Assembly: GCF_037042905.1 (NCBI RefSeq)
Contig: NC_087261.1
Location: forward strand, 9,052,001 to 9,116,000
Direction of reading: 5' to 3'
Source of the DNA: Lytechinus pictus
Taxonomy: Eukaryota
DNA: 64,000 nucleotides
The notes beneath the pieces are model-generated. The model did no database searches. It saw nothing but the letters and a program-made list of their open reading frames with translations, and was not told where the DNA came from. The position numbers were made by a program, and so were the translations under genes. Shown in pieces: positions 2,763 through 7,302 of the stretch; within the stretch, counting starts at the first letter, position 1; each line of letters opens with the position of its first letter.

Positions 2763-3686
2763 GAAAATGAAAAAAAGCGAGATCAATAGTTCGAAAGGAA
2801 AGTTAAAATATACACACTATTTCACGGTTTCTTATAATAACCAGGTAACTGGAAGAAAAGATTGAGTAAAATCAATAAAATATTTCTGAATTAATTTAAC
2901 AAGTGACTTTTCATAAAAGGGATTGGTATACTCAATCGCCAAAAAAAGGCAAAATCGCACTTAAAATTTCTGTATACATACCAAACCTGTTTGAATGAAT
3001 TCTAGATATATTTTGTGCTTTGCAAATTATTTGATTGATGGATATGTTTTTACCATGTTCTAGTACTTGTCGTAGTTTATACATTGGTTGTTACAACATT
3101 AATGTTTTCATATTAACAATAGGACCCCATTGGAAATAGCCTTTCGGCTTTCATGGGTTTTCTTGTCAAGGTGTTCTTCCAATTTAGTGTACCTTATATA
3201 CATGTGATATACTTGACGAATAAAATCAATCAATCAGTCAAATTTCAACATTGAGTGCTTTATCGTAAAATGTTGTTGAGCTCTGCAACATTATGTTTGA
3301 CCGAGGTTTATTAAATCTTATGACTATAATTGTAGCTTTATTTATTCTGTGATATAAACGTTTGACAGGATAGTAACATTCCAGGGCAAAATAATGATAT
3401 ATTTCTTACCTAAAACATCTAAAATTTTAGCTTGAAACCCAAACGTAGACCTATGACAATGTACAGGTCTGTATATAAAATTTGCAATATTGATGGTTAT
3501 AATTATATTGAGATATTATAGAGATTTATTCTGAGGCTTATCATTTCGCATGACTATACATATTTATATAATCTGTGGGATATAATATTAGAATATTATT
3601 ATTCCCGGGCAAGAATATCCATTAAGAAATGCAACTTGTAATTAAACTTAATCATTTACTTCAATGAGTATATAAATTTACAATAT

Positions 3687-5681
3687 TCAGGACAAAGTGA
3701 AATCGCTACATCGGTTATTAACAAGCTTGTTAATCAACCATTCGGCATAATGGTGACAGTTATTGAAGAGCAACGTGTATGTATTGTAACGCATGTACCA
3801 TCGACCCAAACTATCTGCTTGCTCTCGCGTGCAGCGACTCGTGCCTTGATAGGTCCGCCATCCACGGACGCGGGTTCGCCCTAATCCGCCATCAGAGTAC
3901 GGCAGAGTACGACCACGAAATTTTGGAGACCCCCATTCGTAGAACTTATTCCTGAAGTCGACCAAAGAATGCTTAAGCCGCCATTTATTCAAGTAGACAT
4001 CACGTCGTATTTTTCCCCCGCTGGAGTGAAGACCCGGGATGTCTTTCAAAAAATCACTGAATCGATTGTGCCAGTGATTCACGCTTGCATAGTCGGCTGA
4101 TGGGTGAAATTGAAAATACAAAAAAAAATCAATGCATGAAATTAATTGTGTCCGTTTTGCAAATGAGACGAAAGTTTTTCTCCCTCCCCTCATTTTGTTA
4201 ATACATTGACAAGGAATAAAAACAATAATGAATATTGTACAGGACATCTGATAGACATTTTTATTCTCTCTTTGTAAACATAGAACAGATCTATTTCTAA
4301 ATTTTGATATATAATTCCGATAGATTTTCCAAGGTGTGGCTCTGTATGTACTAGATACACACTGCATATTCACTGAATAATACTATGCAAGAAAACCAAA
4401 TATTTACTAAAAGAGAGTCATATTATATTAACAAAAAATACACTGTTACAGGGCGCTATTTGAAATATCAAATAGCAAATATACAATAAGGTGTATCTGA
4501 TAGTGTTGTCACTTGAAAGAGTCTGTAAAAAATACAATTTGGTGCTAATTTAGAATTCAAGGAAGAAGAGAAGATNNNNNNNNNNNNNNNNNNNNNNNNN
4601 NNNNNNNNNNNNNNNNNNNNNNNNNNNNNNNNNNNNNNNNNNNNNNNNNNNNNNNNNNNNNNNNNNNNNNNNNNNNNNNNNNNNNNNNNNNNNNNNNNNN
4701 NNNNNNNNNNNNNTGATGGCGTGGTGGTGGTGCTGCAAGGAGATGATTATGATGATCATGCTGGGGCGGCGATCCTGGGGGGCCGGGGCATAGTGCCCCC
4801 CCCCCATTTTTCAAAGCACTGACCCTCTCACGAACGTGTTCTGTGCCCCTTTCACCTGAGGAGGGCCGGTTTCAGGTGGTATCAAGTGCCCTTTCTCGTA
4901 TGGGGTGCCAATTATAAACAAAAAATTCCCCTTCACGAAAGTGTTCTGTGCTTTCTCTAATCAGTGCCCCTTTTTACCCAAGAAAAGTTCCCTTCACGAA
5001 CGTGTTCAGTGCCCCTTTCATAACTGAGAAGGGCCCGTTTTATGCCGTTAGCAAGTGCTTTTACCACCAAAAAAAAAAGAAAAGGAAAGAGAGTAGGGTG
5101 AAATGAGATATTACTTTGTGAATGTTATGTAAAAATCTATCCCAAAATTGGATTTTCGTTATAAAAATGTCAATTTTTGCTCGCTCGCAAGTTGTAATAG
5201 ATTTCACGCGTTGTGACATATTAGCCGCCTCAAAATTTTAGGCTTATTACGCCACTGTAGATAAGATTTTCCCCCCTTTGTTTTAAGGTGCCCTTTTCGA
5301 AGGAAAATGTGCCCTTTTCCCCTGTACCCTCCCCCCCCCCCCTTTAAACTCTTTAACCCTACGCCGCCCCTGTGACCATGATGATGATCAAGATGATGAT
5401 GTTGGTATAGTGGTGATGATAACGATGATAATTATCTCGTGCAGATCCAGGTCGTTTTTAGCAGGAATGCTTCTCATTTCCGTTTTTTAAGAAAATGCCT
5501 CCCCCCCCCCCCCTGGAGAATCATGTCTTAATCCGATCCCGAAGATGACGAAGGATAAACAAGAATACGAATAATAAGGAGAAATATAAGAAGGGGGTAT
5601 AAAAACTATTGTTAACGTACCTGTCACAGCCGAGATAACCACAACAAGTAAGACAACGGTGAACAGGGCTGCAATCTTCAT
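3687..5681 (-). CDS. Secreted 156-aa protein with a PPPDE/DeSI-like (permuted papain/NlpC-P60) His...NNC motif; 2 exons
   Basis: Exon 1, 5681-5621, encodes MKIAALFTVVLLVVVISAVT (signal-peptide-like) and ends at a phase-1 donor (ACAG|gtacgt). Exon 2, 4096-3687, follows a pyrimidine tract and ccatcag| acceptor and continues in phase to TGA. The product includes KHSLVDFRNKFYEWG and YTLLFNNCHHYAEWL. The intron contains an N gap, so an additional exon cannot be excluded. Confidence 0.75.
4576..4713. other. Assembly gap (138 N)
   Basis: Run of n characters. Confidence 1.
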
Positions 5682-5752
5682 CTTTCTCAGCAGTTTATAT
5701 CGACGAACTGATGAATTTGTCTAGGAACATCTCATGACATCGAGACCTTACG

Positions 5753-5760
5753 TTTAAATA
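5753..5760 (-). promoter_or_regulatory. Candidate TATA box (TATTTAAA) of the secreted PPPDE-like gene
   Basis: Minus-strand TATTTAAA about 75 bp upstream of the ATG at 5681. Confidence 0.35.
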
Positions 5761-6378
5761 GGATAAATGCCAGTGCTCCAATGTCTCAAGAAGTCCAATC
5801 GCTCGTCCATAAAAATAAAAAGTGGTCCGTATAATTGCGTTTTATAAATTACGACTGACTTTAATGTTAACGTAAGCACTATCAACCAATGGAGGATTAT
5901 TTATCATGGTTTTGCAATAATTGATCATAACAATTCTCAAAAAGTGTTTGTTACGACAGGGCCCTCCCGGTCTCCAAATGTGCTGCCGATTCGAGTCATG
6001 TGATTGCTCTTGGCTTTCCTGTCGCGTTTTAGTATAGAAGCACGTCCCTCGTAATGTTATAACCTTTACAGGCTAACTAGATTGGAACCACAGACGTGAG
6101 TGGGTATGTTTTCCTGTTTCAGCGGAAGAAAACAATTGTTACATGAACATTAGAATGTATTTGTCTGCTAACAACCTTGAATTTTTTTTTCTATATATTA
6201 TTTTTAATTTGAAGTAAAATATACATTATCCAATGGAAGAGATGGGCGGATGATCGAATGTATACACTGCAAAATATGAGAAACGCCAAAAATGAGAAAA
6301 ACAGACCCCAAACTCACTCTAGCCTAAACCGCGAAAAAGATATGTAATTTTAAAACCTGGGGCATGTTACAACCGGTA

Positions 6379-7302
6379 ATGTCGCAGCAACGCATAATGT
6401 CGCAGCAACGCATAATGTCGCACCAACGCATAATGTCGCACCAACGCATAATGTCGCACCAACGCATAATGTCGCAGCAACGCATAATGTCGCAGATTGC
6501 GACATTATGCCAAGAGCGTCCGACGCATAATGTCACAGTCAACGCATAATGGGTGATTTCAAGAACGGTGTTGAAATCTGGTGTTGGTGTTGTGACAACA
6601 CCAACACCAGCCACAACACCGTACTTGAAATCAGGCTGGTGTTGGGATTGACCTCGGAAAATATGACGTATTTCCGGCAGTTCGTGTTGAATGCTGGTGT
6701 TGAATGTCGTCTGCTGAACCCAGCACTGCGGCTGGTGTTGACGATCTACGTGCAATTTCCCCATTCACCAACACCAACCCCCAGGGATTGGGAAAATCAT
6801 GATTTCAAGTTCGGTGTTGACTGTTGGTGTTGGCAATCTCAAGCTCGTGAACAGGCGGCGAACACGATGAAACAGTTAAGATGAGTACAAATCATTTGAG
6901 CTGTATATATTTTGATGAAGAATAATGTTCACTCTTTCGAATTCTTGAATTAATTAAAACATTAGTATTCTGCACGATGAGAATTTAATGCATTTCTCTC
7001 CGATTTCATTTTCGTCGTCGAGACTTCTCACGTGAAGTTGAGATGGTTTAGCAGCGCAGCGCAGAGGCGTGACGTCATGTGCTATCGATAACGCAATCGG
7101 TATCATTCCTCTGAACCCAGCTCGGTGTTGGAGCTCGGTTCAGCGGCCTTTTTACGCTCTCAACACCAACACCGAACACCGAACTTGAAATCACCCAATA
7201 TCGTAGTTTTTCTAACGCATAACGTCACATGTCGCAACGCATAATGTCGCAGCAAAGTGTCAACGCATAATGTCACATGTCGCAACGCATAATGTCGCAG
7301 CG
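6379..7302 (+). repeat. 18-bp minisatellite (ATGTCGCA[G/C]CAACGCATA)n interrupted by a TIR element
   Basis: Six near-perfect units at 6379-6490, with degenerate units to 6550 and again at 7214-7302. Confidence 0.9.
6551..7196. mobile_element. Non-autonomous TIR element (PIF/Harbinger-like MITE), AAT TSD
   Basis: Termini GGGTGATTTCAAG...CTTGAAATCACCC, with AAT on both flanks (6548-6550, 7197-7199) and internal GGTGTTG/CAACACC subterminal repeats. Confidence 0.8.

Follow-up and report, generated by a model that had tools for sequence, protein, structure and literature searches.

Within a stretch of 64,000 nucleotides (nt) of the sea urchin Lytechinus pictus genome (NCBI RefSeq assembly GCF_037042905.1, contig NC_087261.1, positions 9,052,001 to 9,116,000; hereafter the window), we analysed a minus-strand gene at positions 3687-5681 whose product is predicted to be a small, exported relative of the PPPDE/DeSI enzymes. 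The coding part of exon 1 (5621-5681) comprises 20 codons, beginning with the ATG, plus the first base of codon 21, and its last G is followed directly by the donor sequence gtacgt; 14 codons separate the ATG at 5681 from the nearest in-frame stop on its upstream side. A phase 1 GT..AG intron (4097-5620; 1524 nt as assembled, with the acceptor ...cccatcag) separates it from the coding part of exon 2 (3687-4096), which carries the rest of residue 21 through residue 156, including the entire PPPDE-like domain, and ends in a TGA stop codon (3689-3687). An assembly gap (4576-4713, no strand), bordered by cat/cac microsatellite-like runs, lies inside the intron, so that the reading frame is unaffected and only the length of the intron is uncertain. 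By joining the two exons (471 nt), we reproduced the 156-amino-acid (aa) protein rich in Arg, Lys, Trp and Tyr that a preliminary description of this DNA had put forward, together with its leader and the strings KHSLVDFRNKFYEWG and YTLLFNNCHHYAEWL. The protein has an isoelectric point (pI) of 10.06, with 24 Lys and Arg residues versus 11 Asp and Glu residues and a net charge of approximately +12, and contains 6 Trp, 9 Tyr and 3 Cys.

Transcript data corroborated the splice. In run X1, a single contig of 1610 nt (depth 23.5) covered positions 3300-4096 and continued at 5621-5950, omitting exactly 1524 nt with CT..AC ends on the plus strand, which correspond to GT..AG on the gene strand. Since the unique sequence of the intron had zero depth in this run, the contig is RNA-derived and the 5621/4096 junction, which the preliminary description had singled out for checking, is real. 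The locus is a genuine, spliced and expressed two-exon gene. The same contig delimits the untranslated regions (UTRs), namely a 5′ UTR of at least 5682-5950, with the contig running approximately 9 nt beyond 5950, and a 3′ UTR at 3300-3686 that is long, since the contig goes on for another 474 nt or so past 3300 and ends near position 2826. Upstream of the ATG, the contig reaches at least 278 nt, across six upstream ATGs that open short reading frames (2-28 codons), and TATA-like boxes at 5699, at approximately 5760 and at 5846 lie inside this transcribed region. The compact TATA-type layout suggested earlier is therefore not supported, and the upstream stretch represents either a long regulated leader in use or a contig merging transcripts. 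The intron contains dispersed repeats at approximately 4813-5079; it was only there that we observed reads of three raw RNA-seq runs of the species (X9 to X11) together with short X1 contigs (depth ~100), at 95-99% identity. This signal stems from a dispersed repeat transcribed elsewhere and not from intron retention.

A phmmer search with the exon-2 protein returned 30 matches at E ≤ 0.001 among 1.84 billion representatives, and because the best of these reached an E value of 1.8e-39, the gene is not a chance open reading frame (ORF). A profile search contributed approximately 50 additional relatives, and residue counts were taken over 76 relatives, with 32 members aligned (alignment A1). Two matches, P0006 (4818 aa) and P0027 (2644 aa, a bacterial repeat protein), were composition or repeat artefacts and were left out. 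The family comprises members from sea urchins (Lytechinus variegatus, L. pictus, Strongylocentrotus purpuratus and Diadema), the sea star Patiria, the sea cucumber Apostichopus, amphioxus, the soft coral Xenia and the stony corals Oculina and Desmophyllum, and all public members are annotated as uncharacterized or carry automatic PPPDE or LRAT domain-containing labels.

In the L. pictus genome, four further copies with 53-61% identity to the window gene lie on the same strand, 15-46 kb away (L002-L005, L013-L017; C17:9,010,126-9,042,708), directly before the start of the window, making five tandem two-exon paralogs. Each of the five has its own leader exon 1.5-3 kb upstream, the leaders of the neighbours reading M-K-[IL]-A-[LV]-L…; these exons were located by translation, since exon 1 and its flank, used as a DNA query against the genome, matched only the gene itself. 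For annotation, the lesson is that a leader exon 1.5 kb upstream converts a seemingly headless ORF into a complete gene. More distant copies are found at C17:1.16 Mb, at C17:7.27/7.29 Mb and on C9, with weak candidates on C14 and C5, giving at least nine copies in the genome, and the motifs H-S-x-V-x-F-R…E-[WF]-G and N-N-C-H-H-[YF]-A are kept in nine of nine clear copies. The search for paralog expansions and invertebrate relatives proposed beforehand thus found both. One locus on C14 (L010; C14:11,129,544-11,129,840) has a 280-aa open frame with a weak match to the family (E 0.12) and to PF05903 (E 0.0019), and is possibly a further, more distant family member.

Synonymous sites between the window gene and its paralogs are saturated, indicating an old divergence. 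The closest relative is P0001 (L. pictus LOC129280575), with 64% identity; in a maximum-likelihood tree it is the sister of the window gene (96/83), and both belong to a Lytechinus clade of seven members (100/99), the counterpart in the tree of the tandem cluster. A search of the genome with P0001 found no copy above 64% identity, so this assembly does not encode P0001, which should not be taken for an ortholog from another species. It is a paralog, a cluster gene that is haplotype-specific or subject to presence/absence variation, or a gene that belongs to a different assembly version.

Profile and structural comparisons together place the protein, as a divergent member, within the PPPDE/DeSI (Peptidase_C97) permuted-papain fold. 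PF05903 matched 30 of the 32 aligned members at E ≤ 0.1 (best 4.2e-9), and P0023 passed its gathering score (36.9 vs 29.2 bits), with P0019 at 28.3 bits; about half of 55 further relatives bear a precomputed PF05903 label. LRAT (PF04970) matched 18 of the 32 (best 2.3e-4) and RTE1-like matched 13, and PPPDE scores were consistently better than LRAT scores for the family. For the window protein itself, the best Pfam match was again PF05903, at E 0.015 and 15.6 bits, below the cut-off of 29.2, which speaks against the assignment; LRAT came second (E 0.08, 13.7 bits) and did not reach its cut-off of 24.3. Judged from these profiles, the protein appears to belong to PPPDE by transitive homology and not by its own Pfam score.

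Searches against the canonical enzymes pointed in the same direction. The two canonical DeSI genes of this genome, both multi-exon, aligned with the Cys box of the family profile (E 6e-7 and 2e-6). The canonical His box (H-T-G-I-V-V-F-G-R-E-Y-F-F-G) has a His-to-Gly spacing of 13, identical to that of the family, and the His box of the window protein (K-H-S-L-V-D-F-R-N-K-F-Y-E-W-G) fits the hairpin pattern H-[ST]-x-[IV]-x-[VF]...G; when the canonical His-box exon was searched with the family profile in hmmsearch, no significant match resulted, and the correspondence is one of spacing, read by eye. In P0023, the Pfam alignment begins four residues after the His. Sequence searches of the PDB with the window protein alone or with P0023 alone returned no match, and the family profile gave a match confined to the Cys-box region (E 0.3-0.8), in which DeSI-1/2 chains line up with the motif.

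The AlphaFold2 model, computed from the alignment of 32 sequences and described here in mature numbering (precursor minus 21), had a predicted local distance difference test score (pLDDT) of 82.6 and a predicted template modelling score (pTM) of 0.78. It contains strands 3-11, 41-47, 50-52 and 79-86 and helices 12-18, 90-103 and 113-125; strand 41-47 begins with the His and helix 113-125 with the Cys, the arrangement of papain-like enzymes. Foldseek placed PPPDE1 (3ebq) first and DeSI-1 (2wp7) second, with a probability of 0.97 and a template modelling (TM) score of ~0.5, at an E value of only 0.05-0.08. VIA-align, run over 48,161 chains, matched DeSI-1 (2wp7) with Z 8.8 and a root-mean-square deviation of 2.5 Å over 98 of 135 residues, followed by TseH (Z 5.9), CLN5 (5.2), Aichivirus 2A (4.7), PLAAT4 (4.6) and YiiX (3.9). 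All of these are papain-like NlpC/P60 relatives, and Atlas searches concurred, with feature neighbours that include TseH and, weakly, CLN5 (0.86). The kinship to the permuted-papain PPPDE/DeSI and LRAT families proposed from the sequence is therefore borne out by Pfam, Foldseek and VIA-align alike.

The best profile and fold match of the family is to DeSI-1 and DeSI-2 (PPPDE2 and PPPDE1; PF05903; PDB 2wp7 and 3ebq), with which it shares the order of elements, in which a His opens a strand and, approximately 70 residues further on, an Asn-Cys opens a helix, as well as the motif Y-x-L-x-x-x-N-C-x-x-F and the spacing of the His box. By contrast, the canonical proteins reside in the cytosol or nucleus and lack a leader, and their genes in this genome are multi-exon, whereas the family has a leader, a Cys pair that is conserved, a basic site in a loop and, 11 residues after the His (His+11), an invariant Glu.

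The predicted catalytic residues are all encoded on the minus strand in exon 2. His63 (mature His42; 3969-3971), at the start of model strand 41-47, is the predicted general base, and Cys134 (mature Cys113; 3756-3758), within the motif N-N-C-H-H and at the first position of helix 113-125, is the predicted nucleophile; judged from the secondary-structure positions and the superposition, the two would be juxtaposed in an active site. Across the relatives, the Cys is kept in 75 of 76 and the His box with Glu at +11 in 71 of 76, and in alignment A1, E53, N112 and C129 are invariant and H42, C88 and C113 are kept in at least 90%, so that both residues of the proposed dyad proved to be conserved in homologs. 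Glu74 (mature Glu53; 3936-3938), invariant at His+11 on the return strand of the hairpin, is a candidate for the third residue that orients the His. Given the two-residue turn of the modelled hairpin, it would pair with position His+2 and thereby occupy the place of the third catalytic residue of LRAT/PLAAT. At His+11, the product of the canonical DeSI-1-like gene in this genome has Phe, a non-polar residue, and in CLN5, Glu183 stabilises His166 (PMC9012467).

Cys109 (mature Cys88; 3831-3833), the first of the conserved pair, and Cys150 (mature Cys129; 3708-3710), invariant in A1, probably form a disulfide. Cys88 immediately precedes helix 90-103, Cys129 immediately follows helix 113-125, and the pair is near-universal among the relatives. 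The earlier suggestion that the cysteines of the RCT and NRC strings pair and leave that of NNC free agrees with this pattern, all of these positions being near-universal in the family. A second Cys pair, with one residue in the N-terminal segment and one after the hairpin, occurs in 41 members; since both are absent from the window protein and from P0001, their joint loss supports them as partners.

Between strand 1 and the strand that bears the His, the window protein contains a dibasic site, K-I-R-R (residues 49-52; 4002-4013, minus strand), which sits in the sole low-confidence loop of the model (pLDDT 57-61). In 63 of 76 relatives, a basic K/R-R site precedes the His by 3-23 residues, often as R-x-K/R-R, and we infer that it is a proprotein-convertase site. 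Because strand 1 precedes the site and belongs to the sheet, a cut there would produce a two-chain enzyme and would not release a propeptide. The coral members (P0040-P0063) have an N-terminal six-Cys LDL-receptor-A-like module, N-N-C-Q replaces N-N-C-H in their motif, and a second basic site (N-R-x-R-R) directly follows their last Cys; their catalytic domain is bracketed by convertase-type sites.

The N-terminus of the window protein consists of M-K, an 18-residue hydrophobic run and A-V-T-A before D-Y. The hydrophobic leader named in the preliminary description is thereby upheld, as it occupies a separate exon in all five tandem paralogs, and a hydrophobic N-terminus is found in 49 of 76 relatives, many of the others being truncated models. 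From this sequence pattern, the leader would direct the 156-aa product to the secretory pathway. Export is further supported by the LDL-receptor-A-like fusions of the corals and a fusion to a Sushi domain in the amphioxus member P0026, by the conserved Cys pair and by the basic sites upstream of the His in 63 of 76 relatives. The idea of a secreted offshoot of the fold is supported in so far as a leader is present and the core is kept; the preliminary description did not take into account that the fold already has members outside the cytosol, CLN5 being a thioesterase of the lysosomal lumen (PMC9012467) and TseH a secreted bacterial peptidoglycan hydrolase (PMC4453574).

CLN5 also offers a different destination for the product. 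The enzyme may stay in the endoplasmic reticulum (ER), Golgi, endolysosome or secretory granule and act there on lipids or lipidated proteins as CLN5 does, with its N-terminus perhaps serving as a signal anchor, and the length of the 18-residue hydrophobic run is in keeping with this. CLN5 (lysosomal S-depalmitoylase; in Atlas, bis(monoacylglycero)phosphate synthase; PDB 6r99) is the third structural match, shares the PPPDE-like permuted papain core, travels the secretory pathway, is stabilised by disulfides and uses a Cys-His pair with a Glu that stabilises the His (PMC9012467). However, CLN5 is far larger (~285 residues resolved, with extra domains), N-glycosylated and lysosomal, whereas the window protein has no N-glycosylation sequon and hence no mannose-6-phosphate route, and it has neither a KDEL-type tail nor a second hydrophobic segment. 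No match to the CLN5 family profile (PF15014) was listed at E ≤ 0.1 for the 32 aligned members, and the small residues A-V-T-A before the exon boundary, together with a Pro at -5 in paralogs, fit a cleaved signal. We therefore regard retention in a luminal compartment as very unlikely.

On balance, we consider it fairly probable that the product is an active, exported Cys-His-Glu acyl or amide hydrolase that acts on an extracellular substrate. In the mechanism that we propose from sequence and model, the leader (residues 1-21) would be removed and the Cys109-Cys150 disulfide would form, after which a proprotein convertase would cut the exposed loop behind Arg52 and leave the N-terminal strand docked in the sheet. 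Cys134, activated by a His63 that Glu74 orients, would then attack an acyl (thio)ester or an amide or isopeptide bond through a thioester acyl-enzyme, a route that we liken to those of DeSI-1/2, CLN5 and PLAAT/LRAT. CLN5, DeSI-1 and DeSI-2 are Cys-His thioesterases that act as depalmitoylases (PMC9012467). Because neither SUMO nor ubiquitin is available outside the cytosol, they would not be the substrate; a lipid, a lipidated protein or a cross-linked peptide of the matrix or cell wall, located extracellularly or in a vesicle lumen, is more likely.

PLAAT and LRAT act on phospholipids, by acyl transfer or hydrolysis through a Cys thioester. These families (H-rev107, 'H-box/NC', PF04970) and the H-box/NC picornavirus 2A proteins have the same permuted NlpC/P60 layout and an N-C-x-H-F motif, their third catalytic residue lies on the return strand of the His hairpin, and their structural Z scores are 4.6-4.7. 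Their catalytic residues, however, are Cys-His-His, and they carry a C-terminal membrane anchor and face the cytosol, whereas the window protein has an invariant Glu in third place and ends in ...N-N-R-C-S-D-F-T-L-S, with no hydrophobic tail.

The second-best structural match, TseH (PDB 6v98), brings in an antibacterial role, in which the product would be a secreted cationic peptidoglycan amidase or endopeptidase of the TseH or NlpC/P60 kind, directed by its basic surface to bacterial envelopes in innate defence. TseH, which is also an Atlas feature neighbour, is a type VI secretion system (T6SS) effector of Vibrio cholerae and, like the proposed enzyme, a secreted papain-like hydrolase that acts beyond the cytosol of its producer; it lyses E. 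coli cells that have been permeabilised, and HHpred linked it, too, to peptidase_C97 (PMC4453574). The pI of 10 and the net charge of the window protein would suit such a role, as would the lineage-specific tandem expansion with a ratio of non-synonymous to synonymous substitution rates (dN/dS) near 1 in young copies, a pattern frequent in defence genes. Yet the high pI is limited to this Lytechinus clade, the pI of the domain across the family ranging from 4.6 to 10.3 with a median of 7.2, and a dN/dS near 1 over short sequences is equally compatible with relaxed constraint. DeSI-1 is also a far better match than TseH, which is 18% identical to the window protein and differs in being bacterial, delivered by the T6SS and paired with an immunity protein, with peptidoglycan as its assigned substrate (PMC4453574), and in having no signal peptide, convertase site or disulfide layout of this kind. 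The support for an antimicrobial role is circumstantial, and we judge it unlikely.

Several observations weigh against an active, exported hydrolase. With 18 residues, the hydrophobic run is on the long side for a signal peptide that is cleaved and could instead act as a signal anchor, and most relatives have R-x-K/R-R, a stronger convertase motif than K-I-R-R. Our literature search found no biochemical assay or other characterisation of the subfamily. In P0001, a Ser stands at the position of the nucleophile, giving N-N-S instead of N-N-C. The tandem copies L002-L004 are recent duplicates, with a synonymous rate (dS) of 0.05-0.09 and a dN/dS of 0.74-1.42, and part of the tandem clade may be losing function or drifting to non-catalytic roles, as illustrated by P0001 and by the loss of Cys88 in L003. 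Lastly, we found no exon reads in the three raw RNA-seq runs X9 to X11, approximately 6% of each of which was sampled; this does not show that the gene is silent, and expression is therefore narrow, restricted or low. In L003 (1498-1881; C17:9,017,109-9,017,489), Phe replaces the first pairing Cys (S-R-F-T, not S-R-C-T), and this copy may be decaying or tolerant of the loss of the disulfide.

Some of these observations would also be accounted for if the fold had been kept as a binding module, or if the protein were a precursor that is cut at the dibasic site to free a basic fragment, with the Cys-His pair a relic in this clade. The Ser in the nearest relative, a paralog with no Cys88, young copies that evolve near neutrality and expression that went undetected in the three RNA runs are all in line with a non-catalytic product. 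The window gene, however, retains the His, the Glu, the Asn-Asn-Cys and both pairing cysteines despite saturated synonymous divergence, and the Cys is kept in all but one of the 76 relatives, which makes loss of catalysis improbable in our assessment. An active hydrolase thus remains our preferred reading for the product of the window gene.

A lead to the setting in which such an enzyme may work comes from expression data for a relative. The mRNAs of S. purpuratus LOC586717 and L. variegatus LOC121431115 are enriched in primary mesenchyme cells (PMCs), which form the skeleton, and LOC586717 is down-regulated by both VEGF and BMP inhibitors, with its function given as 'Unknown' (PMC13200730 Table 2); this is the sole mention of the subfamily that we found in the literature. 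LOC586717 (P0011/P0094, 'PPPDE domain-containing') is the S. purpuratus counterpart of the paralogs at C17:7.27 Mb and is only ~40% identical to the window gene, so the skeletogenic enrichment concerns that relative and not the window gene. Taking the family as a whole, we tentatively suggest, with rather less confidence than for the activity of the window gene, that it represents the first extracellular branch of DeSI/PPPDE: disulfide-locked, convertase-cut, two-chain Cys-His-Glu hydrolases of marine invertebrates (echinoderms, amphioxus and corals) that edit extracellular acyl or isopeptide links, with one branch at work in skeleton-forming cells and the basic Lytechinus cluster possibly acting on microbes.

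Elsewhere in the window, an 18-nt minisatellite at 6377-6495 (6.6 copies, 98% matches), approximately 700 nt upstream of the gene, underlies an apparent 146-aa minus-strand ORF with C-D-I-M-R repeats, and two plus-strand ORFs at 1389-2162 had no Pfam match.

In summary, our analysis describes a spliced and expressed L. pictus gene whose predicted catalytic kind is already known, and CLN5 and TseH already show the fold at work outside the cytosol. What appears to be new, as far as the sequences indicate, is the combination of a leader, a probable disulfide, a convertase-type loop site and a proposed Glu-containing triad in a small metazoan family. DeSI/PPPDE proteins have been studied as cytosolic deSUMOylases, deubiquitinases and, lately, depalmitoylases. 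If our reading is true, a conserved invertebrate family would extend the PPPDE fold to extracellular chemistry and would provide a compact enzyme (~12-16 kDa) for probing the editing of acyl and isopeptide bonds outside cells. Candidate settings for such editing are the biomineralising matrix, given that the ortholog of one paralog is enriched in skeletogenic cells, and the contact between host and microbes.

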